64,000 nt of DNA from Auanema rhodensis (GCA_964057225.1 OZ059895.1:18352001-18416000); one strand, 5' to 3'; shown: positions 1 to 44,368, counted from the first letter of the stretch. The notes: generated by a model from the letters alone, not told the origin. Made by a program: numbers and translations.

Positions 1-175
1 ACACATATCCGTGTCTCAATTTCTTTATTCAAACCTACAGTACTTCGAGACTATAAACGAAAGATTGGAGGTGAAACCAAGTGCTGTCTACGTTGTTTCA
101 AATAGAAAATAATAGAATAATCTCTGTATTATGACGCTTGAGGCATTTTCCAATGTCATTATCTTCTACATTTTC

Positions 176-185
176 AAAACAAAAA
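176..185 (-). terminator. RNA polymerase III oligo-T terminator, repeated in every unit
   Basis: Minus strand reads TCCA-GAAATCC-TTTTT-G-TTTT, with T5 starting 8 nt after A73; invariant in all units inspected. Confidence 0.9.
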
Positions 186-192
186 GGATTTC

Positions 193-264
193 TGGAGATA
201 TGGGGAATTGAACCCCAGCCCTCTCCCATGCTAAGGGAGCGCTCTACCACTGAGCTATATCCCC
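193..264 (-). tRNA. tRNA-Ala(AGC), leftmost of 75 copies (about 57 have this exact sequence)
   Basis: Reverse complement GGGGATATAGCTCAGTGGTAGAGCGCTCCCTTAGCATGGGAGAGGGCTGGGGTTCAATTCCCCATATCTCCA folds as a cloverleaf: acceptor stem with G3:U70, A73 discriminator, anticodon loop TT-AGC-AT, A box TAGCTCAGTGG, B box GGTTCAATTCC. Confidence 0.98.
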
Positions 265-3200
265 ACACATATCCGTGTCTCAATTTCTTTATTCAAACCT
301 ACAGTACTTCGAGACTATAAACGAAAGATTGGAGGTGAAACCAAGTGCTGTCTACGTTGTTTCAATTGAAAATCAATGGGATACTCTCTGTATTATGACT
401 CTTAAAGCATTTCTTAATGTCATTATCTTCTACATTTTCAAAACAAAAAGGATTTCTGGAGATATGGGGAATTGAACCCCAGCCCTCTCCCATGCTAAGG
501 GAGCGTTCTACCACTGAGCTATATCCCCACACATGTCCGTGTTTCAAGTTCTTTATTCAAACCTACAGTACTTCGAGACTATAAACGAAAGATTGGACGT
601 GAAAACAAGTGCTGTCTACGTTGTTTCAAATAGAAATTAATAGAATACTCTCTGTATTATGACGCTTGAAGCATTTTCCAATGTCATTATCTTCTACATT
701 TTCAAAACAAAAAGGATTTCTGGAGATATGGGGAATTGAACCCCAGCCCTCTCCCATGCTAAGGGAGCGCTCTACCACTGAGCTATATCCCCACATATAT
801 CCGTGTCTCAAGTTCTTTATTCAAACCTACAGTACTTCGAGACTATAAACGAAAGATTGGACGTGAAAACAAGTGCTGTCTACGTTGTTTCAAATAGAAA
901 TTAATAGAATACTCTCTGTATTATGACGCTTGAAGCATTTTCCAATGTCATTATCTTCTACATTTTCAAAACAAAAAGGATTTCTGGAGATATGGGGAAT
1001 TGAACCCCAGCCCTCTCCCATGCTAAGGGAGCGCTCTACCACTGAGCTATATCCCCACACATATCCGTATCTCAAGTTCTTTATTCAAACCTACAGTACT
1101 TCGAGACTATAAACGAAAGATTGGACGTGAAACCAAGTACTGTCTACGTTGTTTCAAATAGAAAATAATAGAATAATCTCTGTATTATGACGCTTGAGGC
1201 ATTTTCCAATGTCATTATCTTCTACATTTTCAAAACAAAAAGGATTTCTGGAGATATGGGGAATTGAACCCCAGCCCTCTCCCATGCTAAGGGAGCGCTC
1301 TACCACTGAGCTATATCCCCACACATATCCGTGTTTCAAGTTCTTTATTCAAACCTACAGTACTTCGAGACTATAAACGAAAGATTGGAGGTGAAACCAA
1401 GTGCTGTCTACGTTGTTTCAAATAGAAATTAATAGAATACTCTCAGTATTATGACGCTTGAAGCATTTTCCAATGTCATTATCTTCTACATTTTCAAAAC
1501 AAAAAGGATTTCTGGAGATATGGGGAATTGAACCCCAGCACTCTCCCATGCTAAGGGATCGCTCTACCACTGAGCTATATCCCCACACATATCCGTGTTT
1601 CAAGTTCTTTATTCAAACCTACAGTACTTCGAGACTATAAACGAAAGATTGGAGGTGAAACCAAGTGCTGTCTACGTTGTTTCAAATAGAAATTAATAGA
1701 ATACTCTCAGTATTATGACGCTTGAAGCATTTTCCAATGTCATTATCTTCTACATTTTCAAAACAAAAAGGATTTCTGGAGATATGGGGAATTGAACCCC
1801 AGCCCTCTCCCATGCTAAGGGAGCGCTCTACCACTGAGCTATATCCCCACACATGTCCGTGTTTCAAGTTCTTTATTCAAATCTACAGTACTTCGAGACT
1901 ATAAACGAAAGATTGGAGGTGAAACCAAGTGCTGTCTACGTTGTTTCAAATAGAAATTAATAGAATACTCTCTGTATTATGACGCTTGAAGCATTTTCCA
2001 ATGTCATTATCTTCTACATTTTCAAAACAAAAAGGATTTCTGGAGATATGGGGAATTGAACCCCAGCCCTCTCCCATGCTAAGGGAGCGCTCTACCACTG
2101 AGCTATATCCCCACACATATCCGTGTCTCAATTTCTTTATTCAAACCTACAGTACTTCGAGACTATAAACGAAAGATTGGAGGTGAAACCAAGTGCTGTC
2201 TACGTTATTTCAAAAAGAAATTAATAGAATACTCTCTGTATTATGACGCTTGAAGCATTTTCCAATGTCATTATCTTCTACATTTTCAAAACAAAAAGGA
2301 TTTCTGGAGATATGGGGAATTGAACCCCAGCCCTCTCCCATGCTAAGGGAGCGCTCTACCACTGAGCTATATCCCCACACATATCCGTGTCTCAATTTCT
2401 TTATTCAAACCTACAGTACTTCGAGACTATAAACGAAAGATTGGAGGTGAAACCAAGTGCTGTCTACGTTATTTCAAAAAGAAATTAATAGAATACTCTC
2501 TGTATTATGACGCTTGAAGCATTTTCCAATGTCATTATCTTCTACATTTTCAAAACAAAAAGGATTTCTGGAGATATGGGGAATTGAACCCCAGCCCTCT
2601 CCCATGCTAAGGGAGCGCTCTACCACTGAGCTATATCCCCACACATGTCCGTGTTTCAAGTTCTTTATTCAAACCTACAGTACTTCGAGACTATAAACGA
2701 AAGATTGGAGGTGAAACCAAGTGCTGTCTACGTTATTTCAAAAAGAAATTAATAGAATACTCTCTGTATTATGACGCTTGAAGCATTTTCCAATGTCATT
2801 ATCTTCTACATTTTCAAAACAAAAAGGATTTCTGGAGATATGGGGAATTGAACCCCAGCCCTCTCCCATGCTAAGGGAGCGCTCTACCACTGAGCTATAT
2901 CCCCACACATATCCGTGTCTCAATTTCTTTATTCAAACCTACAGTACTTCGAGACTATAAACGAAAGATTGGAGGTGAAACCAAGTGCTGTCTACGTTGT
3001 TTCAAATAGAAAATAATAGAATAATCTCTGTATTATGACGCTTGAGGCATTTTCCAATGTCATTATCTTCTACATTTTCAAAACAAAAAGGATTTCTGGA
3101 GATATGGGGAATTGAACCCCAGCCCTCTCCCATGCTAAGGGAGCGCTCTACCACTGAGCTATATCCCCACACATATCCGTGTCTCAATTTCTTTATTCAA

Positions 3201-6200
3201 ACCTACAGTACTTCGAGACTATAAACGAAAGATTGGAGGTGAAACCAAGTGCTGTCTACGTTGTTTCAATTGAAAATCAATGGGATACTCTCTGTATTAT
3301 GACTCTTAAAGCATTTCTTAATGTCATTATCTTCTACATTTTCAAAACAAAAAGGATTTCTGGAGATATGGGGAATTGAACCCCAGCCCTCTCCCATGCT
3401 AAGGGAGCGTTCTACCACTGAGCTATATCCCCACACATGTCCGTGTTTCAAGTTCTTTATTCAAACCTACAGTACTTCGAGACTATAAACGAAAGATTGG
3501 ACGTGAAAACAAGTGCTGTCTACGTTGTTTCAAATAGAAATTAATAGAATACTCTCTGTATTATGACGCTTGAAGCATTTTCCAATGTCATTATCTTCTA
3601 CATTTTCAAAACAAAAAGGATTTCTGGAGATATGGGGAATTGAACCCCAGCCCTCTCCCATGCTAAGGGAGCGCTCTACCACTGAGCTATATCCCCACAT
3701 ATATCCGTGTCTCAAGTTCTTTATTCAAACCTACAGTACTTCGAGACTATAAACGAAAGATTGGACGTGAAAACAAGTGCTGTCTACGTTGTTTCAAATA
3801 GAAATTAATAGAATACTCTCTGTATTATGACGCTTGAAGCATTTTCCAATGTCATTATCTTCTACATTTTCAAAACAAAAAGGATTTCTGGAGATATGGG
3901 GAATTGAACCCCAGCCCTCTCCCATGCTAAGGGAGCGCTCTACCACTGAGCTATATCCCCACACATATCCGTGTCTCAAGTTCTTTATTCAAACCTACAG
4001 TACTTCGAGACTATAAACGAAAGATTGGACGTGAAACCAAGTACTGTCTACGTTGTTTCAAATAGAAAATAATAGAATAATCTCTGTATTATGACGCTTG
4101 AGGCATTTTCCAATGTCATTATCTTCTACATTTTCAAAACAAAAAGGATTTCTGGAGATATGGGGAATTGAACCCCAGCCCTCTCCCATGCTAAGGGAGC
4201 GCTCTACCACTGAGCTATATCCCCACACATATCCGTGTTTCAAGTTCTTTATTCAAACCTACAGTACTTCGAGACTATAAACGAAAGATTGGAGGTGAAA
4301 CCAAGTGCTGTCTACGTTGTTTCAAATAGAAATTAATAGAATACTCTCAGTATTATGACGCTTGAAGCATTTTCCAATGTCATTATCTTCTACATTTTCA
4401 AAACAAAAAGGATTTCTGGAGATATGGGGAATTGAACCCCAGCACTCTCCCATGCTAAGGGATCGCTCTACCACTGAGCTATATCCCCACACATATCCGT
4501 GTTTCAAGTTCTTTATTCAAACCTACAGTACTTCGAGACTATAAACGAAAGATTGGAGGTGAAACCAAGTGCTGTCTACGTTGTTTCAAATAGAAATTAA
4601 TAGAATACTCTCAGTATTATGACGCTTGAAGCATTTTCCAATGTCATTATCTTCTACATTTTCAAAACAAAAAGGATTTCTGGAGATATGGGGAATTGAA
4701 CCCCAGCCCTCTCCCATGCTAAGGGAGCGTTCTACCACTGAGCTATATCCCCACACATGTCCGTGTTTCAAGTTCTTTATTCAAACCTACAGTACTTCGA
4801 GACTATAAACGAAAGATTGGACGTGAAAACAAGTGCTGTCTACGTTGTTTCAAATAGAAATTAATAGAATACTCTCTGTATTATGACGCTTGAAGCATTT
4901 TCCAATGTCATTATCTTCTACATTTTCAAAACAAAAAGGATTTCTGGAGATATGGGGAATTGAACCCCAGCCCTCTCCCATGCTAAGGGAGCGCTCTACC
5001 ACTGAGCTATATCCCCACATATATCCGTGTCTCAAGTTCTTTATTCAAACCTACAGTACTTCGAGACTATAAACGAAAGATTGGACGTGAAAACAAGTGC
5101 TGTCTACGTTGTTTCAAATAGAAATTAATAGAATACTCTCTGTATTATGACGCTTGAAGCATTTTCCAATGTCATTATCTTCTACATTTTCAAAACAAAA
5201 AGGATTTCTGGAGATATGGGGAATTGAACCCCAGCCCTCTCCCATGCTAAGGGAGCGCTCTACCACTGAGCTATATCCCCACACATATCCGTGTCTCAAG
5301 TTCTTTATTCAAACCTACAGTACTTCGAGACTATAAACGAAAGATTGGACGTGAAACCAAGTACTGTCTACGTTGTTTCAAATAGAAAATAATAGAATAA
5401 TCTCTGTATTATGACGCTTGAGGCATTTTCCAATGTCATTATCTTCTACATTTTCAAAACAAAAAGGATTTCTGGAGATATGGGGAATTGAACCCCAGCC
5501 CTCTCCCATGCTAAGGGAGCGCTCTACCACTGAGCTATATCCCCACACATATCCGTGTTTCAAGTTCTTTATTCAAACCTACAGTACTTCGAGACTATAA
5601 ACGAAAGATTGGAGGTGAAACCAAGTGCTGTCTACGTTGTTTCAAATAGAAATTAATAGAATACTCTCAGTATTATGACGCTTGAAGCATTTTCCAATGT
5701 CATTATCTTCTACATTTTCAAAACAAAAAGGATTTCTGGAGATATGGGGAATTGAACCCCAGCACTCTCCCATGCTAAGGGATCGCTCTACCACTGAGCT
5801 ATATCCCCACACATATCCGTGTTTCAAGTTCTTTATTCAAACCTACAGTACTTCGAGACTATAAACGAAAGATTGGAGGTGAAACCAAGTGCTGTCTACG
5901 TTGTTTCAAATAGAAATTAATAGAATACTCTCAGTATTATGACGCTTGAAGCATTTTCCAATGTCATTATCTTCTACATTTTCAAAACAAAAAGGATTTC
6001 TGGAGATATGGGGAATTGAACCCCAGCCCTCTCCCATGCTAAGGGAGCGCTCTACCACTGAGCTATATCCCCACACATATCCGTGTCTCAATTTCTTTAT
6101 TCAAACCTACAGTACTTCGAGACTATAAACGAAAGATTGGAGGTGAAACCAAGTGCTGTCTACGTTATTTCAAAAAGAAATTAATAGAATACTCTCTGTA

Positions 6201-9200
6201 TTATGACGCTTGAAGCATTTTCCAATGTCATTATCTTCTACATTTTCAAAACAAAAAGGATTTCTGGAGATATGGGGAATTGAACCCCAGCCCTCTCCCA
6301 TGCTAAGGGAGCGCTCTACCACTGAGCTATATCCCCACACATATCCGTGTCTCAATTTCTTTATTCAAACCTACAGTACTTCGAGACTATAAACGAAAGA
6401 TTGGAGGTGAAACCAAGTGCTGTCTACGTTGTTTCAAATAGAAAATAATAGAATAATCTCTGTATTATGACGCTTGAGGCATTTTCCAATGTCATTATCT
6501 TCTACATTTTCAAAACAAAAAGGATTTCTGGAGATATGGGGAATTGAACCCCAGCCCTCTCCCATGCTAAGGGAGCGCTCTACCACTGAGCTATATCCCC
6601 ACACATATCCGTGTCTCAATTTCTTTATTCAAACCTACAGTACTTCGAGACTATAAACGAAAGATTGGAGGTGAAACCAAGTGCTGTCTACGTTGTTTCA
6701 ATTGAAAATCAATGGGATACTCTCTGTATTATGACTCTTAAAGCATTTCTTAATGTCATTATCTTCTACATTTTCAAAACAAAAAGGATTTCTGGAGATA
6801 TGGGGAATTGAACCCCAGCCCTCTCCCATGCTAAGGGAGCGTTCTACCACTGAGCTATATCCCCACACATGTCCGTGTTTCAAGTTCTTTATTCAAACCT
6901 ACAGTACTTCGAGACTATAAACGAAAGATTGGACGTGAAAACAAGTGCTGTCTACGTTGTTTCAAATAGAAATTAATAGAATACTCTCTGTATTATGACG
7001 CTTGAAGCATTTTCCAATGTCATTATCTTCTACATTTTCAAAACAAAAAGGATTTCTGGAGATATGGGGAATTGAACCCCAGCCCTCTCCCATGCTAAGG
7101 GAGCGCTCTACCACTGAGCTATATCCCCACATATATCCGTGTCTCAAGTTCTTTATTCAAACCTACAGTACTTCGAGACTATAAACGAAAGATTGGACGT
7201 GAAAACAAGTGCTGTCTACGTTGTTTCAAATAGAAATTAATAGAATACTCTCTGTATTATGACGCTTGAAGCATTTTCCAATGTCATTATCTTCTACATT
7301 TTCAAAACAAAAAGGATTTCTGGAGATATGGGGAATTGAACCCCAGCCCTCTCCCATGCTAAGGGAGCGCTCTACCACTGAGCTATATCCCCACACATAT
7401 CCGTGTCTCAAGTTCTTTATTCAAACCTACAGTACTTCGAGACTATAAACGAAAGATTGGACGTGAAACCAAGTACTGTCTACGTTGTTTCAAATAGAAA
7501 ATAATAGAATAATCTCTGTATTATGACGCTTGAGGCATTTTCCAATGTCATTATCTTCTACATTTTCAAAACAAAAAGGATTTCTGGAGATATGGGGAAT
7601 TGAACCCCAGCCCTCTCCCATGCTAAGGGAGCGCTCTACCACTGAGCTATATCCCCACACATATCCGTGTTTCAAGTTCTTTATTCAAACCTACAGTACT
7701 TCGAGACTATAAACGAAAGATTGGAGGTGAAACCAAGTGCTGTCTACGTTGTTTCAAATAGAAATTAATAGAATACTCTCAGTATTATGACGCTTGAAGC
7801 ATTTTCCAATGTCATTATCTTCTACATTTTCAAAACAAAAAGGATTTCTGGAGATATGGGGAATTGAACCCCAGCACTCTCCCATGCTAAGGGATCGCTC
7901 TACCACTGAGCTATATCCCCACACATATCCGTGTTTCAAGTTCTTTATTCAAACCTACAGTACTTCGAGACTATAAACGAAAGATTGGAGGTGAAACCAA
8001 GTGCTGTCTACGTTGTTTCAAATAGAAATTAATAGAATACTCTCAGTATTATGACGCTTGAAGCATTTTCCAATGTCATTATCTTCTACATTTTCAAAAC
8101 AAAAAGGATTTCTGGAGATATGGGGAATTGAACCCTAGCCCTCTCCCATGCTAAGGGAGCGCTCTACCACTGAGCTATATCCCCACACATGTCCGTGTTT
8201 CAAGTTCTTTATTCAAACCTACAGTACTTCGAGACTATAAACGAAAGATTGGAGGTGAAACCAAGTGCTGTCTACGTTATTTCAGATAGAAATTAATAGA
8301 ATACTCTCAGTATTATGACGCTTGAGGCATTTCCCATTGTCATTATCTTCTACATTTTCAAAACAAAAAGGATTTCTGGAGATATGGGGAATTGAACCCC
8401 AGCCCTCTCCCATGCTAAGGGAGCGCTCTACCACTGAGCTATATCCCCACACATATCCGTGTCTCAATTTCTTTATTCAAACCTACAGTACTTCGAGACT
8501 ATAAATGAGATATTGGAGGTGAAAACAAGTGCTGTCTACGTTGTTTCAAATAGAAAATAATAGAATAATCTCTGTATTATGACGCTTGAGGCATTTTCCA
8601 ATGTCATTATCTTCTACATTTTCAAAACAAAAAGGATTTCTGGAGATATGGGGAATTGAACCCCAGCCCTCTCCCATGCTAAGGGAGCGCTCTACCACTG
8701 AGCTATATCCCCACAGATATCCGTGTCTCAATTTCTTTATTCAAACCTACAGTACTTCGAGACTATAAATGAAATATTGGAGGTGAAAACAAGTGCTGTC
8801 TACGTTGTTTCAAATAGAAAATAATAGAATAATCTCTGTATTATGACGCTTGAGGCATTTTCCAATGTCATTATCTTCTACATTTTCAAAACAAAAAGGA
8901 TTTCTGGAGATATGGGGAATTGAACCCCAGCCCTCTCCCATGCTAAGGGAGCGCTCTACCACTGAGCTATATCCCCACACTTATCCGTGTCTCAATTTCT
9001 TTATTCAAACCTACAGTACTTCGAGACTATAAATGAAATATTGGAGGTGAAAACAAGTGCTGTCTACGTTGTTTCAAATAGAAAATAATAGAATACTCTC
9101 AGTATTATGACGCTTGAGGCATTTCCCATTGTCATTATCTTCTACATTTTCAAAACAAAAAGGATTTCTGGAGATATGGGGAATTGAACCCCAGCCCTCT

Positions 9201-12200
9201 CCCATGCTAAGGGAGCGCTCTACCACTGAGCTATATCCCCACAGATATCCGTGTCTCAATTTCTTTATTCAAACCTACAGTACTTCGAGACTATAAACGA
9301 AAGATTGGAGGTGAAACCAAGTGCTGTCTACGTTATTTCGGATAGAAATTAATAGAATACTCTCAGTATTATGACGCTTGAGGCATTTCCCATTGTCATT
9401 ATCTTCTACATTTTCAAAACAAAAAGGATTTCTGGAGATATGGGGAATTGAACCCCAGCCCTCTCCCATGCTAAGGGAGCGCTCTACCACTGAGCTATAT
9501 CCCCACACTTATCCGTGTCTCAATTTCTTTATTCAAACCTACAGTACTTCGAGACTATAAATGAAATATTGGAGGTGAAAACAAGTGCTGTCTACGTTGT
9601 TTCAAATAGAAAATAATAGAATACTCTCAGTATTATGACGCTTGAGGCATTTCCCATTGTCATTATCTTCTACATTTTCAAAACAAAAAGGATTTCTGGA
9701 GATATGGGGAATTGAACCCCAGCACTCTCCCATGCTAAGGGATCGCTCTACCACTGAGCTATATCCCCACACATATCCGTGTCTCAATTTCTTTATTCAA
9801 ACCTACAGTACTTCGAGACTATAAACGAAAGATTGAAGGTGAAACCAAGTGCTGTCTACGTTATTTCAGATAGAAATTAATAGAATACTCTCAGTATTAT
9901 GACGCTTGAGGCATTTCCCATTGTCATTATCTTCTACATTTTCAAAACAAAAAGGATTTCTGGAGATATGGGGAATTGAACCCCAGCCCTCTCCCATGCT
10001 AAGGGAGCGCTCTACCACTGAGCTATATCCCCACACATATCCGTGTCTCAATTTCTTTATTCAAACCTACAGTACTTCGAGCCTATAAATGAAATATTGG
10101 AGGTGAAAACAAGTGCTGTCTACGTTGTTTCAAATAGAAAATAATAGAATACTCTCTGTATTATGACGCTTGAGGCATTTTCCAATGTCATTATCTTCTA
10201 CATTTTCAAAACAAAAAGGATTTCTGGAGATATGGGGAATTGAACCCCAGCCCTCTCCCATGCTAAGGGAGCGCTCTACCACTGAGCTATATCCCCACAC
10301 ATATCCGTGTCTCAATTTCTTTATTCAAACCTACAGTACTTCGAGCCTATAAATGAAATATTGGAGGTGAAACCAAGTGCTGTCTACGTTATTTCAGATA
10401 GAAAATAATAGAATACTCTCTGTATTATGACGCTTGAGGCATTTTCCAATGTCATTATCTTCTACATTTTCAAAACAAAAAGGATTTCTGGAGATATGGG
10501 GAATTGAACCCCAGCCCTCTCCCATGCTAAGGGAGCGCTCTACCACTGAGCTATATCCCCACACATATCCGTGTCTCAATTTCTTTATTCAAACCTACAG
10601 TACTTCGAGACTATAAATGAAATATTGGAGGTGAAACCAAGTGCTGTCTACGTTATTTCGGATAGAAATTAATAGAATACTCTCAGTATTATGACGCTTG
10701 AGGCATTTTCCAATGTCATTATCTTCTACATTTTCAAAACAAAAAGGATTTCTGGAGATATGGGGAATTGAACCCCAGCCCTCTCCCATGCTAAGGGAGC
10801 GCTCTACCACTGAGCTATATCCCCACAGATATCCGTGTCTCAATTTCTTTATTCAAACCTACAGTACTTCGAGACTATAAATGAAATATTGGAGGTGAAA
10901 ACAAGTGCTGTCTACGTTATTTCGGATAGAAAATAATAGAATAATCTCTGTATTATGACGCTTGAGGCATTTTCCAATGTCATTATCTTCTACATTTTCA
11001 AAACAAAAAGGATTTCTGGAGATATGGGGAATTGAACCCCAGCCCTCTCCCATGCTAAGGGAGCGCTCTACCACTGAGCTATATCCCCACACATATCCGT
11101 GTCTCAATTTCTTTATTCAAACCTACAGTACTTCGAGACTATAAATGAAATATTGGAGGTGAAAACAAGTGCTGTCTACGTTGTTTCAAATAGAAAATAA
11201 TAGAATAATCTCTGTATTATGACGCTTGAGGCATTTTCCAATGTCATTATCTTCTACATTTTCAAAACAAAAAGGATTTCTGGAGATATGGGGAATTGAA
11301 CCCCAGCCCTCTCCCATGCTAAGGGAGCGCTCTACCACTGAGCTATATCCCCACACATATCCGTGTCTCAATTTCTTTATTCAAACCTACAGTACTTCGA
11401 GACTATAAATGAAATATTGGAGGTGAAAACAAGTGCTGTCTACGTTGTTTCAAATAGAAAATAATAGAATAATCTCTGTATTATGACGCTTGAAGCATTT
11501 TCCAATGTCATTATCTTCTACATTTTCAAAACAAAAAGGATTTCTGGAGATATGGGGAATTGAACCCCAGCCCTCTCCCATGCTAAGGGAGCGCTCTACC
11601 ACTGAGCTATATCCCCACACATATCCGTGTCTCAATTTCTTTATTCAAACCTACAGTACTTCGAGACTATAAATGAAATATTGGAGGTGAAAACAAGTGC
11701 TGTCTACGTTGTTTCAGATAGAAATTAATAGAATACTCTCAGTATTATGACGCTTGAGGCATTTTCCAATGTCATTATCTTCTACATTTTCAAAACAAAA
11801 AGGATTTCTGGAGATATGGGGAATTGAACCCCAGCCCTCTCCCATGCTAAGGGAGCGCTCTACCACTGAGCTATATCCCCACACATATCCGTGTCTCAAT
11901 TTCTTTATTCAAACCTACAGTACTTCGAGCCTATAAATGAAATATTGGAGGTGAAACCAAGTGCTGTCTACGTTGTTTCAAATAGAAAATAATAGAATAC
12001 TCTCTGTATTATGACGCTTGAGGCATTTTCCAATGTCATTATCTTCTACATTTTCAAAACAAAAAGGATTTCTGGAGATATGGGGAATTGAACCCCAGCC
12101 CTCTCCCATGCTAAGGGAGCGCTCTACCACTGAGCTATATCCCCACACATATCCGTGTCTCAATTTCTTTATTCAAACCTACAGTACTTCGAGACTATAA

Positions 12201-13656
12201 ATGAAATATTGGAGGTGAAAACAAGTGCTGTCTACGTTGTTTCAAATAGAAAATAATAGAATAATCTCTGTATTATGACGCTTGAGGCATTTTCCAATGT
12301 CATTATCTTCTACATTTTCAAAACAAAAAGGATTTCTGGAGATATGGGGAATTGAACCCCAGCCCTCTCCCATGCTAAGGGAGCGCTCTACCACTGAGCT
12401 ATATCCCCACACATATCCGTGTCTCAATTTCTTTATTCAAACCTACAGTACTTCGAGACTATAAATGAAATATTGGAGGTGAAAACAAGTGCTGTCTACG
12501 TTGTTTCAAATAGAAAATAATAGAATATTCTCTGTATTATGACGCTTGAAGCATTTTCCAATGTCATTATCTTCTACATTTTCAAAACAAAAAGGATTTC
12601 TGGAGATATGGGGAATTGAACCCCAGCCCTCTCCCATGCTAAGGGAGCGCTCTACCACTGAGCTATATCCCCACACATATCCGTGTCTCAATTTCTTTAT
12701 TCAAACCTACAGTACTTCGAGACTATAAATGAAATATTGGAGGTGAAAACAAGTGCTGTCTACGTTGTTTCAAATAGAAAATAATAGAATAATCTCTGTA
12801 TTATGACGCTTGAGGCATTTTCCAATGTCATTATCTTCTACATTTTCAAAACAAAAAGGATTTCTGGAGATATGGGGAATTGAACCCCAGCCCTCTCCCA
12901 TGCTAAGGGAGCGCTCTACCACTGAGCTATATCCCCACACATATACGTGTCTCAATTTCTTTATTCAAACCTACAGTACTTCGAGCCTATAAATGAAATA
13001 TTGGAGGTGAAACCAAGTGCTGTCTACGTTGTTTCAAATAGAAAATAATAGAATACTCTCTGTATTATGACGCTTGAGGCATTTTCCAATGTCATTATCT
13101 TCTACATTTTCAAAACAAAAAGGATTTCTGGAGATATGGGGAATTGAACCCCAGCCCTCTCCCATGCTAAGGGAGCGCTCTACCACTGAGCTATATCCCC
13201 ACACATATCCGTGTCTCAATTTCTTTATTCAAACCTACAGTACTTCGAGACTATAAATGAAATATTGGAGGTGAAAACAAGTGCTGTCTACGTTGTTTCA
13301 AATAGAAAATAATAGAATAATCTCTGTATTATGACGCTTGAGGCATTTTCCAATGTCATTATCTTCTACATTTTCAAAACAAAAAGGATTTCTGGAGATA
13401 TGGGGAATTGAACCCCAGCCCTCTCCCATGCTAAGGGAGCGCTCTACCACTGAGCTATATCCCCACACATATCCGTGTCTCAATTTCTTTATTCAAACCT
13501 ACAGTACTTCGAGCCTATAAATAAAATATTGGAGGTGAAACCAAGTGCTGTCTACGTTGTTTCAAATAGAAAATAATAGAATACTCTCTGTATTATGACG
13601 CTTGAGGCATTTCCCATTGTCATTATCTTCTACATTTTCAAAACAAAAAGGATTTC

Positions 13657-14520
13657 TGGAGATATGGGGAATTTAACCCCAGCCCTCTCCCATGCTAAGG
13701 GAGCGCTCTACCACTGAGCTATATCCCCACACATATCCGTGTCTCAATTTCTTTATTCAAACCTACAGTACTTCGAGCCTATAAATGAAATATTGGAGGT
13801 GAAAACAAGTGCTGTCTACGTTGTTTCAAATAGAAAATAATAGAATAATCTCTGTATTATGACGCTTGAGGCATTTTCCAATGTCATTATCTTCTACATT
13901 TTCAAAACAAAAAGGATTTCTGGAGATATGGGGAATTGAACACCAGCCCTCTCCCATGCTAAGGGAGCGCTCTACCACTGAGCTATATCCCCACACATGT
14001 CCGTGTCTCAATTTCTTTATTCAAACCTACAGTACTTCGAGACTATAAATGAAATATTGGAGGTGAAAACAAGTGCTGTCTACGTTGTTTCAAATAGAAA
14101 ATAATAGAATAATCTCTGTATTATGACGCTTGAGGCATTTTCCAATGTCATTATCTTCTACATTTTCAAAACAAAAAGGATTTCTGGAGATATGGGGAAT
14201 TGAACCCCAGCCCTCTCCCATGCTAAGGGAGCGCTCTACCACTGAGCTATATCACCACACATATCCGTGTCTCAATTTCTTTATTCAAACCTACAGTACT
14301 TCGAGACTATAAATGAAATATTGGAGGTGAAAACAAGTGCTGTCTACGTTGTTTCAAATAGAAAATAATAGAATAATCTCTGTATTATGACGCTTGAGGC
14401 ATTTTCCAATGTCATTATCTTCTACATTTTCAAAACAAAAAGGATTTCTGGAGATATGGGGAATTGAACACCAGCCCTCTCCCATGCTAAGGGAGCGCTC
14501 TACCACTGAGCTATATCCCC
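13657..14520 (-). pseudogene. Four consecutive mutant tRNA-Ala copies: C56A, G52U, G3U, G52U
   Basis: Plus-strand variants atttaacccc (13657-13728), gaacaccagc (13921-13992 and 14449-14520), atatcacc (14185-14256). They hit the invariant B-box C56, a T-stem pair and the G3:U70 identity pair. Confidence 0.7.
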
Positions 14521-16296
14521 ACACATATCCGTGTCTCAATTTCTTTATTCAAACCTACAGTACTTCGAGCCTATAAATGAAATATTGGAGGTGAAACCAA
14601 GTGCTGTCTACGTTATTTCAGATAGAAATTAATAGAATACTCTCAGTATTATGACGCTTGAGGCATTTCCCATTGTCATTATCTTCTACATTTTCAAAAC
14701 AAAAAGGATTTCTGGAGATATGGGGAATTGAACCCCAGCCCTCTCCCATGCTAAGGGAGCGCTCTACCACTGAGCTATATCCCCACAGATATCCGTGTCT
14801 CAATTTCTTTATTCAAACCTACAGTACTTCGAGCCTATAAATGAAATATTGGAGGTGAAACCAAGTGCTGTCTACGTTGTTTCAAATAGAAAATAATAGA
14901 ATACTCTCTGTATTATGACGCTTGAGGCATTTTCCAATGTCATTATCTTCTACATTTTCAAAACAAAAAGGATTTCTGGAGATATGGGGAATTGAACCCC
15001 AGCCCTCTCCCATGCTAAGGGAGCGCTCTACCACTGAGCTATATCCCCACACATATCCGTGTCTCAATTTCTTTATTCAAACCTACAGTACTTCGAGACT
15101 ATAAATGAAATATTGGAGGTGAAAACAAGTGCTGTCTACGTTGTTTCAAATAGAAAATAATAGAATATTCTCTGTATTATGACGCTTGAAGCATTTTCCA
15201 ATGTCATTATCTTCTACATTTTCAAAACAAAAAGGATTTCTGGAGATATGGGGAATTGAACCCCAGCCCTCTCCCATGCTAAGGGAGCGCTCTACCACTG
15301 AGCTATATCCCCACACATATCCGTGTCTCAATTTCTTTATTCAAACCTACAGTACTTCGAGACTATAAATGAAATATTGGAGGTGAAAACAAGTGCTGTC
15401 TACGTTGTTTCAAATAGAAAATAATAGAATAATCTCTGTATTATGACGCTTGAGGCATTTTCCAATGTCATTATCTTCTACATTTTCAAAACAAAAAGGA
15501 TTTCTGGAGATATGGGGAATTGAACCCCAGCCCTCTCCCATGCTAAGGGAGCGCTCTACCACTGAGCTATATCCCCACACATATCCGTGTCTCAATTTCT
15601 TTATTCAAACCTACAGTACTTCGAGCCTATAAATGAAATATTGGAGGTGAAACCAAGTGCTGTCTACGTTGTTTCAAATAGAAAATAATAGAATACTCTC
15701 TGTATTATGACGCTTGAGGCATTTTCCAATGTCATTATCTTCTACATTTTCAAAACAAAAAGGATTTCTGGAGATATGGGGAATTGAACCCCAGCCCTCT
15801 CCCATGCTAAGGGAGCGCTCTACCACTGAGCTATATCCCCACACATATCCGTGTCTCAATTTCTTTATTCAAACCTACAGTACTTCGAGACTATAAATGA
15901 AATATTGGAGGTGAAAACAAGTGCTGTCTACGTTGTTTCAAATAGAAAATAATAGAATAATCTCTGTATTATGACGCTTGAGGCATTTTCCAATGTCATT
16001 ATCTTCTACATTTTCAAAACAAAAAGGATTTCTGGAGATATGGGGAATTGAACCCCAGCCCTCTCCCATGCTAAGGGAGCGCTCTACCACTGAGCTATAT
16101 CCCCACACATATCCGTGTCTCAATTTCTTTATTCAAACCTACAGTACTTCGAGCCTATAAATAAAATATTGGAGGTGAAACCAAGTGCTGTCTACGTTGT
16201 TTCAAATAGAAAATAATAGAATACTCTCTGTATTATGACGCTTGAGGCATTTCCCATTGTCATTATCTTCTACATTTTCAAAACAAAAAGGATTTC

Positions 16297-17160
16297 TGGA
16301 GATATGGGGAATTTAACCCCAGCCCTCTCCCATGCTAAGGGAGCGCTCTACCACTGAGCTATATCCCCACACATATCCGTGTCTCAATTTCTTTATTCAA
16401 ACCTACAGTACTTCGAGCCTATAAATGAAATATTGGAGGTGAAAACAAGTGCTGTCTACGTTGTTTCAAATAGAAAATAATAGAATAATCTCTGTATTAT
16501 GACGCTTGAGGCATTTTCCAATGTCATTATCTTCTACATTTTCAAAACAAAAAGGATTTCTGGAGATATGGGGAATTGAACACCAGCCCTCTCCCATGCT
16601 AAGGGAGCGCTCTACCACTGAGCTATATCCCCACACATGTCCGTGTCTCAATTTCTTTATTCAAACCTACAGTACTTCGAGACTATAAATGAAATATTGG
16701 AGGTGAAAACAAGTGCTGTCTACGTTGTTTCAAATAGAAAATAATAGAATAATCTCTGTATTATGACGCTTGAGGCATTTTCCAATGTCATTATCTTCTA
16801 CATTTTCAAAACAAAAAGGATTTCTGGAGATATGGGGAATTGAACCCCAGCCCTCTCCCATGCTAAGGGAGCGCTCTACCACTGAGCTATATCACCACAC
16901 ATATCCGTGTCTCAATTTCTTTATTCAAACCTACAGTACTTCGAGACTATAAATGAAATATTGGAGGTGAAAACAAGTGCTGTCTACGTTGTTTCAAATA
17001 GAAAATAATAGAATAATCTCTGTATTATGACGCTTGAGGCATTTTCCAATGTCATTATCTTCTACATTTTCAAAACAAAAAGGATTTCTGGAGATATGGG
17101 GAATTGAACACCAGCCCTCTCCCATGCTAAGGGAGCGCTCTACCACTGAGCTATATCCCC
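16297..17160 (-). pseudogene. Duplicate block of four mutant tRNA-Ala copies (C56A, G52U, G3U, G52U)
   Basis: Same variants in the same order exactly 2640 bp (10 units) to the right. Confidence 0.7.
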
Positions 17161-19728
17161 ACACATATCCGTGTCTCAATTTCTTTATTCAAACCTACAG
17201 TACTTCGAGCCTATAAATGAAATATTGGAGGTGAAACCAAGTGCTGTCTACGTTATTTCAGATAGAAATTAATAGAATACTCTCAGTATTATGACGCTTG
17301 AGGCATTTCCCATTGTCATTATCTTCTACATTTTCAAAACAAAAAGGATTTCTGGAGATATGGGGAATTGAACCCCAGCCCTCTCCCATGCTAAGGGAGC
17401 GCTCTACCACTGAGCTATATCCCCACAGATATCCGTGTCTCAATTTCTTTATTCAAACCTACAGTACTTCGAGACTATAAATGAAATATTGGAGGTGAAA
17501 ACAAGTGCTGTCTACGTTGTTTCAAATAGAAAATAATAGAATACTCTCTGTATTATGACGCTTGAGGCATTTTCCAATGTCATTATCTTCTACATTTTCA
17601 AAACAAAAAGGATTTCTGGAGATATGGGGAATTGAACCCCAGCCCTCTCCCATGCTAAGGGAGCGCTCTACCACTGAGCTATATCCCCACACATATCCGT
17701 GTCTCAATTTCTTTATTCAAACCTACAGTACTTCGAGCCTATAAATGAAATATTGGAGGTGAAACCAAGTGCTGTCTACGTTATTTCAGATAGAAATTAA
17801 TAGAATACTCTCAGTATTATGACGCTTGAGGCATTTCCCATTGTCATTATCTTCTACATTTTCAAAACAAAAAGGATTTCTGGAGATATGGGGAATTGAA
17901 CCCCAGCCCTCTCCCATGCTAAGGGAGCGCTCTACCACTGAGCTATATCCCCACAGATATCCGTGTCTCAATTTCTTTATTCAAACCTACAGTACTTCGA
18001 GACTATAAATGAAATATTGGAGGTGAAAACAAGTGCTGTCTACGTTGTTTCAAATAGAAATTAATAGAATAATCTCTGTATTATGACGCTTGAGGCATTT
18101 TCCAATGTCATTATCTTCTACATTTTCAAAACAAAAAGGATTTCTGGAGATATGGGGAATTGAACCCCAGCCCTCTCCCATGCTAAGGGAGCGCTCTACC
18201 ACTGAGCTATATCCCCATACATGTACGTGTTTCAATTTCTTTATTCAAACCTACAGTACTTCGAGACTATAAATGAAATATTGGAGGTGAAAACAAGTGC
18301 TGTCTACGTTGTTTAAAATAGAAATTAATAGAATACTCTCTGTATTATGACGCTTGAAGCATTTTCCAATGTCATTATCTTCTACATTTTCAAAACAAAA
18401 AGGATTTCTGGAGATATGGGGAATTGAACCCCAGCCCTCTCCCATGCTAAGGGAGCGCTCTACCACTGAGCTATATCCCCACACATGTACGTGTCTCAAT
18501 TTCTTTATTCAAACCTACAGTACTTCGAGACTATAAATGAAATATTGGAGGTGAAAACAAGTGCTGTCTACGTTGTTTAAAATAGAAATTAATAGAATAC
18601 TCTCTGTATTATGACGCTTGAAGCATTTTCCAATGTCATTATCTTCTACATTTTCAAAACAAAAAGGATTTCTGGAGATATGGGGAATTGAACCCCAGCC
18701 CTCTCCCATGCTAAGGGAGCGCTCTACCACTGAGCTATATCCCCATACATGTACGTGTTTCAATTTCTTTATTCAAACCTACAGTACTTCGAGACTATAA
18801 ATGAAATATTGGAGGTGAAAACAAGTGCTGTCTACGTTGTTTAAAATAGAAATTAATAGAATACTCTCTGTATTATGACGCTTGAAGCATTTTCCAATGT
18901 CATTATCTTCTACATTTTCAAAACAAAAAGGATTTCTGGAGATATGGGGAATTGAACCCCAGCCCTCTCCCATGCTAAGGGAGCGCTCTACCACTGAGCT
19001 ATATCCCCACACATGTACGTGTCTCAATTTCTTTATTCAAACCTACAGTACTTCGAGACTATAAATGAAATATTGGAGGTGAAAACAAGTGCTGTCTACG
19101 TTGTTTAAAATAGAAATTAATAGAATACTCTCTGTATTATGACGCTTGAAGCATTTTCCAATGTCATTATCTTCTACATTTTCAAAACAAAAAGGATTTC
19201 TGGAGATATGGGGAATTGAACCCCAGCCCTCTCCCATGCTAAGGGAGCGCTCTACCACTGAGCTATATCCCCATACATGTACGTGTTTCAATTTCTTTAT
19301 TCAAACCTACAGTACTTCGAGACTATAAATGAAATATTGGAGGTGAAAACAAGTGCTGCCTACGTTGTTTCAAATAGAAATTAATAGAATACTCTCTGTA
19401 TTATGACGCTTGAAGCATTTTCCAATGTCATTATCTTCTACATTTTCAAAACAAAAAGGATTTCTGGAGATATGGGGAATTGAACCCCAGCCCTCTCCCA
19501 TGCTAAGGGAGCGCTCTACCACTGAGCTATATCCCCACACATGTACGTGTCTCAATTTCTTTATTCAAACCTACAGTACTTCGAGACTATAAATGAAATA
19601 TTGGAGGTGAAAACAAGTGCTGTCTACGTTGTTTCAAATAGAAAATAATAGAATAATCTCTGTATTATGACGCTTGAAGCATTTTCCAAAGTCATTATCT
19701 TCTACATTTTCAAAACAAAAAGGATTTC

Positions 19729-19800
19729 TGGAGATATGGGGAATTGAACCCCAGCCCTCTCCCATGCTAAGGGAGCGCTCTACCACTGAGCTATATCCCC
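19729..19800 (-). tRNA. tRNA-Ala(AGC), terminal copy nearest the acr-3 exon
   Basis: Identical to the canonical copy; G1 lies 57 nt after the end of the acr-3 exon. Confidence 0.98.
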
Positions 19801-19857
19801 ACACATGTACGTGTTTCAAGTTCTTTATTCCTTTTATACTTAAGTTTTCGGTCTTAC

Positions 19858-20219
19858 CATTGTTGGCCAAACATTTGTGTGCATTATTTGATTTTTTTCA
19901 TCAATATTTATCAGTAATACCAAAGCTAAGCTAAAGGCAACCTGTAACTTAATATCAATTTTGCTCAGAGTGTATTTAAAGTAAACCTGTATTGGCGGTG
20001 ATGAACAGTTTTGCACTGGTCTTATGAGAGAGTTATAACCATAAAAAAGGTCAGAAGTGAGGCGATGCTCATCTTGTGAACTAATAATGATATTTAAGTG
20101 GCTCACAAAATAAGCTGAAATATGATTTCTAGTATTTTTAATCTTTTTTTATTTCTTTTTTTTTTAATCTTTTTTTATTCGCTGTATACCAAAGTTTCGC
20201 TTAGATAAAATAGGGTCAT
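19858..20219 (-). CDS. acr-3: Non-alpha nicotinic acetylcholine receptor subunit ACR-3, 5' exons only; rest presumably beyond the array; start unresolved or frameshifted
   Basis: Exons 20114-19987 (..[31 protein letters not shown]) and 19941-19858 (VAFSLALVLLINIDEKNQIMHTNVWPTM), then donor GTAAGA. The FSLAxVLLIN and NVWPTM motifs match recalled C. elegans ACR-3, and the position directly behind acr-2 agrees. Candidate first exon 20219-20190. Confidence 0.85.
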
Positions 20220-20367
20220 CTACAAGTATGCTTATTTATTATGAGAATTGAGAATCGTTTCGTTAGTTTTACACGTACTTTGCGTTGAAAATATATATCA
20301 TCGGATACATTGTTGTTTATACTAAATAATATATTATACCGATACTTTCACTAATTTTTGTTTTGTT

Positions 20368-21966
20368 TTAATCAGTAATATTGAGATATTTCGAATTAAG
20401 TTTCTTGATAATTTGTTCTTGATCTACAAAGTCAAAAACATGTGGAGCTGACAATATGATTCCAACAGTACCACCTGAAATATGAAAATTATGTTTTATT
20501 TTATTTGTATTATGTGTCTCGCCCAATGTTATTCCAAAAAATACTAGTAACAATAAACGATCTATGACCATTGCAACATATTTCCAATCGTCCCGAATCT
20601 AAATTTTTTTAATGTTTGTCACCGTATAGTAATGAATAGTTGCCGTGTCTGTAACTTACTTTTTTTCGACTCATTTGAGTTTTCATGTGCTCAGCTATAT
20701 ATGCAATTGATTCAACTGTTGTTTTCATCTGAAATATAATTGTAACAAGTTAATAGATGCAGAAAACATAACCAATTATATCGTACCTCACGACTAATAC
20801 GTTCTTGTTCTGTTCGTGGTGCTTCATTAATAGGTTCCATGCAAGTCGCTTCTGGTATTGCTCCCTACATTTTTCGAAATATATTAAATCTTCTGGTTGT
20901 TATACCTCATTTTTCTTTTTTCGAGAAAATCGTCTACTTAATCGCTTTTTCCATTTCGAACAGTTCTCATGATGTTCTTCAGAATTAGGAGGCTTGGCAA
21001 TTTTTGTTTGTGTCATTTGCAAGAACGGCACTATTGTAGCCGTCATTGAAGGCATAACCAGACCTAAATTATTAGGTTACTGAAGGAATCAAGTTCGAAA
21101 AACTGCTTGCTTGTGAGTGAGTGAAAATCACATGTTAGATCTTAATAATCGGTCATTTAATTCACATTATATATAGTTAATGTTAACTGTGCACAACAAC
21201 CAAGGAAAATATATGTGTATTAAGTTAATATAAAGGAAAGTAAAAGAGAAAATATGTTAAGCTATAGATACTATAGTAAAGAATTCACATCAAACATTTT
21301 CAATAATTTTCGATCAACTTGATTATTGCAGAAAGAAAGACAGAAACAATGAAAAATTGAAAAGTGTAAACTATGTGCAAACTTGACTTAAATCATATAG
21401 ACAGATGTGAATATGATTTATGTATTGAATCTTACTTGGCTCTCCGCTTTCAAAATCTGTATCAGTATCAGTTCGTTCTGTGATTGTATCTTCACAGCTA
21501 CCTAATATATACTTAGATCTAACATATATGTATGTGAGATTTAGTATATAATATATACTATATACAAATGTATATAATGTATATTATTATCAAATATAAT
21601 TTATCCAAATAGTATTTGTAACATACTTGCATCAATAATTTCAGCAGCACAATATTCTTCCACGAAATATCCATTATAAATAGGAATACGTTCTGGACGT
21701 CTCATCATTAAAAATTTTGGCAGAAATTCCAAGAAAATCTGCCGAACCCAATTGGGCATCTCGTGTGATAAAGCACTTCGAAAATAAACATTGACAATGA
21801 TGACTGTGACCTGAAAATTAAAATAAAATAATTCACTGATGCATACAATTATAAAATAAATAAAAAACTAACAACAACAGTTATAATGTTGAGAACAAAT
21901 GCTAATAACAGATATTTTCCCATTAAAGGAATATTTGAAGTTGGTGGTAAGATCTATAAACAAATA

Positions 21967-22012
<46 letters not shown>

Positions 22013-25000
22013 TCTTTTTTTTTTTGAATATCAGTTGAAATTTAACAATATTAATAAAATTATAAAAATTTGACATTTATAGTTTCAAAATTGAGTAGAA
22101 ATAACCTTTGATACAAGAAGGAGAAACACAACCAAAGCCAATAATAAACTTATTGTCAATGATATTTTCTCTCCTGAATCAGCTGGTAAATAAAATGCCA
22201 TCATTGACAAAAATGCCATGAGTACAGTTGGAATAATCAAGATGACTGTATAAAACAATGTTTTCCTGAAATAAGATACATTATATGAATATTTTTTATT
22301 ATGTAAACAGTTAAGAAATAGTTAACCTTCGTATTACAAGATTGAAGACAATTCTGCTTTCCTTGGCATCTCGTTTGGTAACCAAATATCCCGGTACATC
22401 TACGATATGATATAATAAGTTAGCATGAATAAGTTTTTCAACTACCTATTACATCCCAAATTCCACTGAATTGATAATCAGTTAACTGAACAGCTTGTAT
22501 ATTGTTATACCAATTGAGTAAAACCTGTAAAATTAAATTTGGAATTGTTTCTGTTTTTTGATTTGTCTGTTCTACCTCATCCGAATTATAAGTCCATGAT
22601 CCAAATACTAATGTACAGCTTTGCTCATCAAATGGAAACCTGAATAATTATTTTTGTATCCATTAATTTAATGTTTATTATACATACCATTCAACATCTA
22701 TCCGACAACTACTTTTGAACATTGCCGGAGGCACCCAAATCACATCACCTCGATGATCAACAAATGCATTTGACTTGAACGATACCTCATAATTGCCATC
22801 AGCACTGAAAATAAAAATGAAACAAAAATTTATTTATAACTAATATAATAAAAATAAAATATTATAATTATATACAACCGCATTATGATGTATTTGCACG
22901 TAAAATGAACCATAAGCGTGGCTCATTTTTCACGTAATAGGGTGATTGGAATTCATGGAATACATGCATTTATGCTAATTCCCTTATATATATTCTTGAA
23001 AAGAAGATTCGACACACTTTGTGTGATTACTCAATTTGCTTTGTAAGACAAATGTAAAACTATAATTAGGAGAGGAAGTCTTCCGAAACAAATAAGGAAA
23101 GCTTTAGCATGTCGATCTCGCCCACTCATCAGATCTAATTGCACATATAGATCAATTGAATTGCGTTCCGAAACACTGAACTCTTTAAAGCAATCTATGG
23201 TAACTACTCATTATGCATACAATGCGTAATGAAATACTTATAGAATTTGCTTTCACCACATCTTCACCAAATCTTTAGCACGAATGCATGTACTTGACCC
23301 ATTCTCGTTCTCCCTATCTCTCTCAGTCATTACTGATTCTTTAACTTACTTTTTCTTTCTTTTCTTTTTACACCCATCTCTCTTTTTCTCATTCTTCGCT
23401 TATTATTGTTCGAACCAGAAAATGAATATGTTGATATATCTGAAGCTTAATGCCAAAGATTTCAGTGTCTTAATCAAAACATTTTAATGTACAATATCAA
23501 CATTTTAAATCCCTTTTCTTGTTTTTTTTATTTTTCACATCAAATTTTTATTTGAATCGCAATTTGTTTAACGATTATCTGAACTATTGTTTTGTGTGAG
23601 CACATTCGATATGCTCATTTGTGAGCAGCTTTATCTAATTTACAGATGTGCAACTAACAATTCAGATATTTTGGAAATACGTGAAGACACATACGCGATT
23701 GATAAAGAAGCAGAAAAGATAAATATATTGACTAAATTAGTCTACTATTTCACAAAGATATATAATAATTATAAAAACATATAAAAAGACTAAAATCATT
23801 TTTTATTTTACAAAAAATGAAAAAGTTTTTTTATTTTTTGATAAAAAAAAACCAAAAATAGTTTGAACATACTTGTTGAATAGTACAATATCTGGTAACC
23901 ATACACGATCAGAAGGAACATGAATAGTTGAAATGTTACCTGAAAATTAAAGATTTTTATTTTTATAAACTAAAACCAACCATAATCATCAGGATTCCAT
24001 CGTAATTGGAAATCATTCCATTTCATTGTTAGCCATACATTTGTATGCAAGATTTGATTTTTTTCATCCTAAAACGATATGAAAATTGATAAATATTAGA
24101 AAATTAAGCTTAAGCTGAACTTACAACGTTAATTAGAAGAATCATAGCAACTCCAAAATCAACAATAACTGGTGGGCTGCAAAAACATAAAAGTTTTCAA
24201 GAAAAACTGTATACGCTTTGCTTCATAAGCTTAAGGCTTTTCAACTTCAAGCTGATAAACTATTTTACCTGCTCACATTCTGGACTGGCCGAATCAAACT
24301 ATTATATTCTCGAAATAAATCGATTAGAAGTCTCTCCTCATCTTCACCAACTTCATCTAAAAATATATTTTAGAAACACCATTAAAAAAATAAAATAAAA
24401 ATATGATAAGAATATGAATACTTGGTTATTCGATGTATTGAGAACCAATTTTTTTTTTCTTTCATTCTATTTTTTTTATTTTTCATTAATAAAACATAAA
24501 GAAATAGAAGAAGAAATAATTTTGATTTACTAAATTATTTTACTCAGATTGATGAATTAATTGTCAAGCTGTATTAAATATTCATGAATAATAAAAGAAT
24601 ATTATGTATCCTTTTTAGTTCCATTTTTTGCAAAAATAAGAGAAATAAAACATTTTTAATATACATATATATATATATGTATATTATCGATTTCATTTCA
24701 TTTCATAACACCAGAAAGGATTTAAGTTTTTTTCTGTTTATTAAGATGATTGTTGCATGTCAAAAGTTTTAAACAATTTCTTGATTGTTCATGAAATTGT
24801 GTATTGGCTAAAAAGCAATTTGACAATTTTCTCATTCTTTAATGGTCCCAAAACGACTTTCAAAATTTGAAGAACAAAGCATTGCAACTACTTGACAAAT
24901 TTAACCAGTTTTCGGCCACAATAAAAAGTTTCCTCAGATAATTAGAAGAAAATGTAAAAGAGTGAAATGCACAGACTATGGTTTTAGTCTTTGTTGATTA

Positions 25001-31864: not shown

Positions 31865-32340
31865 TCATGCTAATGGCTTTGTCGTGTCATAGATTGATGG
31901 AGCTCGGCATATGATTACGATTGTTCCAAGAGCACAAGCGCAGGTGAAAAGTAGTAGAAATATCCTATCCATTACTACCGATATGTATTTCCAGTCTTCC
32001 ACAACCTGTAAGAAAAAAGCATGAGTCAAGTCTGCTTCATTAGCTTTTCAGCTTATTTTCAAAAAGATTGTTTCAGAAGTATTCACATAAAAGATACATA
32101 CCTGCTTCTCTTCTTCCTCGTTTTTCAGATGATCAGCTATATATGCTACACTTTCTACAGCTGACCTCACCGGAGAAACATCTCTGCAAGCAGAAATATT
32201 AATTGAGTTTACTATTGTCAAAACTTAAAAAGGAAAAAAGAAAAAAAGAACTTTACTTCTGTTGTTATTCCCGCAATTTGTTTTGCAGAAAGGCGAAGAA
32301 ATTGCAAGAATAAGACTTGGAAAAAGCAAGAGAGAGAGAG

Positions 32341-32383
<43 letters not shown>

Positions 32384-38300: not shown

Positions 38301-39687
38301 TCAGACATCGAGAGATGACAGATCAACGTGAGACAGCCAGCCTGTTCAGAGAAGTCACAGTTGAGGTTATAATGCATTTAAGCTCAGCATATTCAACTTT
38401 TTATCACTGCATAACCGCAAAATATATAAGTGAGCATATGAACTAGCCACAGATCAACGACTTGACGATGACAAACGGATGATTGACACGTGCAGTTATT
38501 GCTGCATCCGTGAATACATTGTTCGTGCTATTAGGATTTTCAGCATTTGCATCACATCCACTACGAAACTGATTGTTGGTGTTTTCGTTGATAGAAAAGA
38601 AAAACCATTAATTCATTTTTTAAAATACAGAAATAATGCAATTATTTCTCCCTTAACTTACAGCATTATTTGATATTTTAAAATATATATCTTATTTCCG
38701 TTCCATCATATTCTCAAATAAGCAAAAAAAAGAGAACAAACTCAAGATATGAATCTTCCGATCATCAAATTCTGAATCAAGAGCTTCAGTCATTGAAAAT
38801 ATCTCTATCTTATCGTCATTTGGATATATAACAAAAGAAATACGGCAATATCATTCACACATCCATCTATGAAAGAAAGAAGAGAAATAGATTGATGCAC
38901 AGAAAGAGAAGATACTTTCTTCAATCTTGTAAGCCCAAAAAAATTTGATCCGGATTGCAAAATAAACGCAAATATATAAGATTTGGTGTGACAAAAACCA
39001 ATTAAGCCATTTGATTCTTATAAAAAATAGAAAAAGAACAAGTAAAATGGCCAAAAGTTATAGATTCATCATTCTTTACTCCATCCTCATACCCAAATTG
39101 CAGCTTCATCTCAATGAGCATGTTGCTCAGATTGTATAAACTATTTGGAGGGAGATGCAAACATGAAATTACTGGGAACATGGAAATGAGCAATGAAAAT
39201 AAAACTTTTTTTGTTGTTAAAATCGTGTAAATTGATCTAAATTTAATTCAAAAAACAGTGAATGAAAAAATAATAACATGAAAACATACCACGTCAAGAA
39301 GTTGACTGAGCTTAAGCTTGAATCGTACTACAAGTGTATCGCTGTTGTTATCAACTGGTCGAACCAACTTATTATAGTCAGCTAACAAATCCTTAAATGG
39401 AATATAATTATTATGATGAAAAAGAATTTTCATAATTCTATTGGGTCAAAAGTGAAAAGCTTATGTTGAGCAAGTTTTATGTTGTTGGACATAAACAAAC
39501 AGAATGAAACGCATGACAGTTCAACCAAATTAAATGTTTCATATATCGTTGAAATGAAGAAAAGATGATTTTTTCAATAAAAAAACTTTAATAATTCAAA
39601 AATTACTTCGAATAATCGATTAGCGTCGCGATTTGCACGCGCGAGCAGGGTGGCCCACGCTATTAGTAGACACACTACTCGGAGCAT
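31865..39687 (-). CDS. unc-63: Alpha nicotinic acetylcholine receptor subunit UNC-63 (505 aa, 16 coding exons)
   Basis: Exons 39687-39607, 39391-39290, 37875-37831, 35167-35058, 34809-34717, 34597-34536, 34487-34359, 34233-34158, 33345-33238, 33155-33052, 33002-32896, 32815-32699, 32604-32530, 32482-32397, 32183-32102, 32005-31865 total 1518 nt in frame. Signal peptide [18 protein letters not shown], then [22 protein letters not shown]; loop [29 protein letters not shown]; C terminus [13 protein letters not shown]. Confidence 0.96.
32330..32381. repeat. Interrupted (GA)n microsatellite in an unc-63 intron
   Basis: Directly visible. Confidence 0.9.
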
Positions 39688-39805
39688 TCGGCCCCATCAA
39701 CCTGTAAAAAGAAAAAACTATTTTTGTATTCTTGTAAAATAGATAATAAAAGATTTTAATGAGAAGTTAATAAAGACATGATATGAACATTGAGAAACAA
39801 CTTAC

Positions 39806-44285: not shown

Positions 44286-44289
<4 letters not shown>

Positions 44290-44360
<71 letters not shown>
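44290..44360. repeat. (CT)n microsatellite
   Basis: Directly visible, about 35 units. Confidence 0.95.

Positions 44361-44368
<8 letters not shown>

Follow-up and report, generated by a model that had tools for sequence, protein, structure and literature searches.

The transfer RNA (tRNA) genes of Caenorhabditis are dispersed and largely syntenic, and a 2010 survey named the arrays of Entamoeba histolytica as the only tRNA tandem repeat reported until then (PMC2888827). Here we describe a locus that departs from the textbook case of dispersed, partly syntenic tRNA genes that nematodes represent: a tandem array of tRNA-Ala(AGC) genes beginning next to an exon of the acetylcholine receptor gene acr-3, in a 64,000-nucleotide stretch of the Auanema rhodensis genome (GCA_964057225.1, OZ059895.1:18352001-18416000; hereafter the window, with positions counted from its first base). 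The array is most readily likened to those of E. histolytica, in which hundreds of intact tRNA genes are laid out in head-to-tail units of a few hundred bases, with several arrays per genome. Entamoeba units often hold several isotypes together with short tandem repeats, and the arrays are thought to lie at chromosome ends. The array described here differs in carrying one isotype per unit, in its animal host and in its apparent position within a protein-coding gene.

Two reports describe, in their abstracts, tandem tRNA units of variable copy number, growing by unequal exchange, in plant and vertebrate clusters (PMC10701932, PMC4041453), such as the Arabidopsis Cys and other tRNA clusters, the human 1q23.3 tRNA repeat and the tRNA gene repeats of Xenopus and zebrafish. 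These clusters have far fewer copies: the Arabidopsis Cys cluster counts four genes and the human repeat 9-43 units of 7.3 kb, and none is reported within the intron of a conserved gene. With respect to its host gene, the array resembles the giant introns of the Drosophila Y chromosome, which likewise make one ask how transcription and splicing are managed. There, ordinary introns of conserved, Y-linked fertility genes have been hugely expanded by tandem repeats; those are simple satellites, whereas the units here carry genes for RNA polymerase III (Pol III), each a potential polymerase roadblock and a site for RNase P and RNase Z in the sense strand. Nematode tRNA genes often sit singly in introns, and Caenorhabditis elegans keeps its 5S ribosomal DNA and SL1 spliced-leader genes as 1-kb tandem arrays of about 100 copies. 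A search of the literature on tRNA arrays and satellites in nematodes, Heterorhabditis included, found no report of one. The locus would be a nematode satellite of one tRNA isotype that arose within a conserved intron, a variation on the tRNA arrays known from elsewhere.

Positions 1-19830 form one tandem array with a period of exactly 264 base pairs (bp), 97% matches and 0% indels, as delimited by Tandem Repeats Finder, and ARAGORN places one tRNA-Ala(AGC) gene in each of 75 units (75/75), always on the minus strand and at a spacing of exactly 264 bp. A first-pass annotation, made from the sequence alone, had counted at least 75 such genes over 19.8 kb, oriented in the sense of acr-3, in an array that does not end in the window. 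All of these statements were borne out: the two programs give 75.1 copies and 75 genes, the tRNA genes and acr-3 share the minus strand, and the array is cut through by the left window edge at base 1, its end lying beyond. The features at and around the junction are as follows.

1-19830, minus strand: tandem array of 264-bp units, 75.1 copies, one tRNA-Ala(AGC) gene per unit (Tandem Repeats Finder, ARAGORN, unit statistics).
19729-19800, minus strand: exon-proximal tRNA-Ala(AGC) gene, 72 nucleotides (nt), with G3:U70, A and B boxes and T5 (Rfam, 69.5 bits; sequence reading).
19801-19830, minus strand: terminal partial unit, made up of the 30 nt that precede the first tRNA gene, with AATAAA at -28 (unit comparison).
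19831-19857, minus strand: unique intron sequence, 27 nt, opening with the donor GTAAGA at 19857-19852 (sequence reading; ACR-3 alignments end at 19858).
19858-19941, minus strand: acr-3 exon, 84 nt (28 codons), ending NVWPTM (alignments to orthologues).
19942-19986, minus strand: 45-nt intron (GTTTAC...TTACAG), in frame by chance (sequence reading; alignment gap to orthologues).
19987-20114, minus strand: acr-3 exon with a consensus TTTCAG acceptor ahead of it at 20120-20115 (alignments; sequence reading).

Read in the tRNA sense, each unit consists of a 30-nt 5' flank, the 72-nt tRNA and a 162-nt 3' flank. The array genes score 69.5 bits against the Rfam tRNA family RF00005 (gathering score 29), and in the consensus unit G3 pairs with U70, the mark of alanine identity, the A and B boxes stand where they should, and a T5 terminator begins 8 nt past the tRNA 3' end. 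Every unit also carries AATAAA at -28 in its 5' flank, which could be a TATA-like element and which, in the sense of acr-3, also reads as the poly(A)-signal hexamer. Across the 64-kb window ARAGORN finds zero tRNA genes outside the array, a search of the window's other 44 kb yielded nothing resembling the 264-bp unit, and the spacer matches no Rfam family above chance. The unit was also considered as a dispersed repeat, a candidate that was rejected for having zero further copies within the window.

Variation among the units is distributed very unevenly. The tRNA sequence is identical in 57 of the 75 copies, and the other 18 carry one or two substitutions, at positions that include G3 (lost in 2/75), C56 of the B box (lost in 2/75) and the stems. 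Heterozygosity averages 0.008 across the tRNA and 0.006 across the initial 40 nt of the 3' flank, as against 0.049 in the remaining 3' flank and 0.056 in the 5' flank; taken together, the tRNA and the adjoining 38 nt on its 3' side are 6-7 times less polymorphic than the remainder of the unit. Of 72 sites in the tRNA, 7 segregate, versus 39 of 152 in the distal spacer (Fisher p=0.007); variants that are common within the unit occupy 1/112 versus 16/152 positions (p=0.0015), and sense positions 56-110 of the unit, from the T loop to 38 nt into the 3' flank, show zero variants in 75 copies. Because the whole unit amplifies together, polymorphism this uneven points to constraint on the tRNA core, and the lower variation of the tRNA part fits tRNA genes in working order better than a satellite of purely structural role. 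The same tRNA variants reappear 10-13 units apart, the 75 units comprise 42 distinct sequences, and runs of up to six units reappear unchanged; such recurring multi-unit blocks are the pattern expected under repeated unequal exchange.

The gene beside the array had been named acr-3, and closer comparison agrees. In an exhaustive protein search with the acr-3 piece, nematode ACR-3 proteins came out on top (Ancylostoma ceylanicum 84%, Angiostrongylus cantonensis 75%), and the 28-codon exon encodes a protein segment identical to the same stretch of the protein from the hookworm A. ceylanicum. The motif TNVWPTM was confined to proteins named ACR-3 (Caenorhabditis briggsae, Toxocara, Aphelenchus) and their close matches, whereas proteins named ACR-2, UNC-29 and LEV-1 have TNVWLT[LM] in its place. 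Immediately upstream on the same strand lies an acr-2-like gene that stops at 20368, the acr-3 exon beginning at 20114. The order acr-2 to acr-3 is kept in C. briggsae (460 nt apart), an exon of acr-2 type for the fourth transmembrane segment (TM4) lies upstream of acr-3 in A. ceylanicum, and the two genes are fused in gene models of several other nematodes. Judged by its best matches, by TNVWPTM and by its conserved position behind acr-2, the gene is an acr-3 orthologue.

Every ACR-3 alignment ends exactly at 19858 and GTAAGA comes next, as expected from the earlier description of an exon ending NVWPTM with a clean donor. Reading through past 19858 gives no similarity to the KW.DYQ... that comes next in all orthologues, and the window contains no ACR-3 match to the left of this position. 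GTAAGT follows the same methionine codon in A. ceylanicum and in a Logan contig from a second relative; in these two loci the next exon is about 0.2-0.4 kb away, and neither has a tRNA gene. In C. briggsae, by comparison, coding is continuous at the NVWPTM boundary and the whole gene occupies 2.5 kb with neither this intron nor any tRNA gene. In the comparison of orthologous introns that had been suggested at the outset, the intron is present here and in strongylid-type relatives and absent in C. briggsae, which by these alignments makes it a gain or loss marking a lineage. Since relatives have a short intron at the same codon boundary, we regard the 19857 donor as genuine and the array as occupying a formerly small, lineage-specific intron whose ancestral state, judging from the same loci, was empty of tRNA genes. 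The claim that the array lies inside an acr-3 intron therefore stands for the donor and for the conserved intron position, while the acceptor side lies outside the window.

Two further features of the A. ceylanicum acr-3 locus were observed. Residues at about 134-175 are matched twice, 1.7 kb apart (12212-12491 and 13918-14104 of the locus sequence), which looks like duplicated or alternative exons, and the deposited 170-residue model omits the exon after NVWPTM and then takes the next exon in the wrong frame.

The junction itself is simply built. The donor and the start of the first tRNA gene are 57 nt apart, a distance made up of 27 unique bases (19857-19831, the number given in the first-pass annotation) and the 30-nt 5' flank common to every unit. 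This layout is as predicted by in-place amplification of one segment, and so fits the origin proposed earlier for the array. As for size, coding-match gaps in the two neighbouring receptor genes measure tens of bases at the least and about 2.6 kb at the most, in rough agreement with the earlier remark that most other introns here measure 41-60 nt and the longest about 3.3 kb; the array takes up no less than 19.8 kb.

We therefore favour, with a probability of roughly 0.6, the interpretation that the locus is an in-place amplified satellite of working tRNA-Ala genes within a former small acr-3 intron. A tRNA-Ala(AGC) gene would have come, by duplication or by insertion, to sit in the small phase-0 intron common to strongylid-type relatives, and a single 264-bp segment would then have been amplified in place by unequal exchange to give a satellite. 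Each unit retains what Pol III needs, namely the A box, the B box, a T5 terminator that begins 8 nt past the tRNA and, at -28, an A/T-rich element, together with G3:U70; because these promoter and terminator elements are intact and the tRNA core is protected, the array can be read as a working Pol III gene array. It may serve as a bulk source of tRNA-Ala, kept and resized by unequal exchange in a manner comparable to the upkeep of nematode 5S and spliced-leader gene arrays. Its location in acr-3 is probably an accident rather than design, leaving a gene that would now be interrupted by 19.8 kb or more of Pol III genes in its own orientation. We infer the Pol III activity of the array, its origin in place and the existence of acr-3 exons on its far side from the features set out above.

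Such an array bears on tRNA supply, on how arrays are kept uniform and on how they originate, and its own origin would be datable, having occurred in a small intron that can still be seen empty in relatives. A further question is how a conserved receptor gene could be transcribed and spliced through many Pol III genes. A bolder extension, which we consider doubtful, is that acr-3 is still expressed, with RNA polymerase II (Pol II) passing through an array of active sense-oriented Pol III genes and the exons being joined, and that this is the first known animal genome with most of its tRNA genes in isotype-specific satellites. If true, the locus would be a natural test of interference between Pol II and Pol III and of intron-length delay in a neuronal gene.

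Several observations weigh against a working array in a spliceable intron, and they are best considered together with the alternatives that they suggest. AATAAA stands 27 nt after the donor in the sense of acr-3 and again in every unit, and the exon at 20114-19987 has no in-frame ATG; both would fit a disabled host gene, and the potential Pol III roadblocks and RNase P and RNase Z sites throughout the acr-3 pre-mRNA would count against acr-3 function. These points lend themselves to the view that acr-3 is dead, the intron having become unspliceable, or the downstream part of the gene having been lost, as the satellite grew. The window would then hold a recently orphaned 5' fragment whose transcripts stop in the first units, either at AATAAA hexamers or at Pol III complexes. 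The same view gains from the disparity in size with neighbouring introns and from database searches that yielded no ACR-3 protein from the source nematode; searches of protein collections, with tblastn against the window, gave no protein identical to the window's acr-3 exons, a result that says little either way. An in-frame start could come only from a putative 32-nt exon with donor GTACGT (20310-20279), spliced to a weak acceptor at 20129; such an exon would sit upstream of the acr-2-like gene's AATAAA (about 20235). A separate ATG at 20072, which opens a signal-peptide-like frame of 16 codons (20072-20022), is out of frame with the conserved frame and was set aside as coincidence. A dead gene is, however, at odds with two visible exons that have neither stop codon nor frameshift, with the protein identity of the 28-codon exon to the hookworm, and with the retention of an N-glycosylation motif and of both splice sites of the small intron, and Drosophila Y-linked genes do splice giant introns filled with satellite. 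On balance we think it unlikely that acr-3 is dead, and we put its productive splicing at roughly even odds, with a slight preference for splicing that continues at a low level.

The working state of the array may be questioned in its turn. About one-quarter of the copies are substituted at important positions (G3, C56, stems), so that the protection of individual copies is not strong; the invariant stretch runs about 38 nt beyond the tRNA, farther than the T5 terminator accounts for; and large Arabidopsis tRNA clusters are reportedly largely silent, which means that intact sequence is no proof of use. A selfish or structural satellite that carries its tRNA gene only incidentally, with silenced copies, and that would act at most as a chromatin landmark, which the first-pass annotation had pictured as bound by TFIIIC/condensin, or be germline-restricted DNA, would accommodate the damaging substitutions and the reported silence of plant clusters. 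It does not predict a tRNA core with so much less polymorphism than the spacer, nor a unit boundary that retains exactly the -30 region and the terminator, and we consider it improbable. An assembly artefact, in which the array was wrongly joined to the acr-3 exon or its length inflated, is suggested by the difficulty of assembling long arrays of 97% identity. Yet at the junction a partial unit meets unique sequence at a distance of 27 nt from a conserved donor, so that the junction does not fall within a repeat, and the ordered variants and block structure among units are typical of a real array. Moreover, five DNA runs, several of which may be the assembly's source, contain all sampled 31-mers of 19802-25800, an interval that spans the junction, and one run labelled as another organism contains 87% of them. 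We consequently hold an artefact to be very improbable, and retain the in-place satellite of working tRNA-Ala genes as the preferred interpretation. Four small RNA runs contain about one-fifth of the sampled words of the same interval, a share that could be accounted for by the acr-2-like gene's exons.

The remainder of the window contains two further receptor genes, the nearer of which has the following extent.

20368-24369, minus strand: acr-2-like nicotinic acetylcholine receptor gene of TNVWLTM type, ending with a TM4 exon and TAA at 20370-20368 (coding matches).

Between this gene and acr-3 there is an A-rich low-complexity stretch at 20135-20180 (minus strand), and upstream of it an unc-63-like gene occupies 31886-39696, also on the minus strand. 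The closest named relative protein is an UNC-63/ACR-2 fusion model of Heterorhabditis bacteriophora, with 73-97% identity per exon; the H. bacteriophora model A0A1I7W8U1 joins unc-63 to the start of acr-2, which indicates a three-gene cluster shared with Heterorhabditis. The closest named matches place the source nematode in clade V, in the neighbourhood of Heterorhabditis and the strongylids but distinct from H. bacteriophora. Farther along, positions 40001-44400 combine long reading frames of low complexity with a strong purine/pyrimidine strand skew (GC skew 0.34-0.46, AT skew 0.30-0.33), and a (CT)48 microsatellite lies at 44284-44378.

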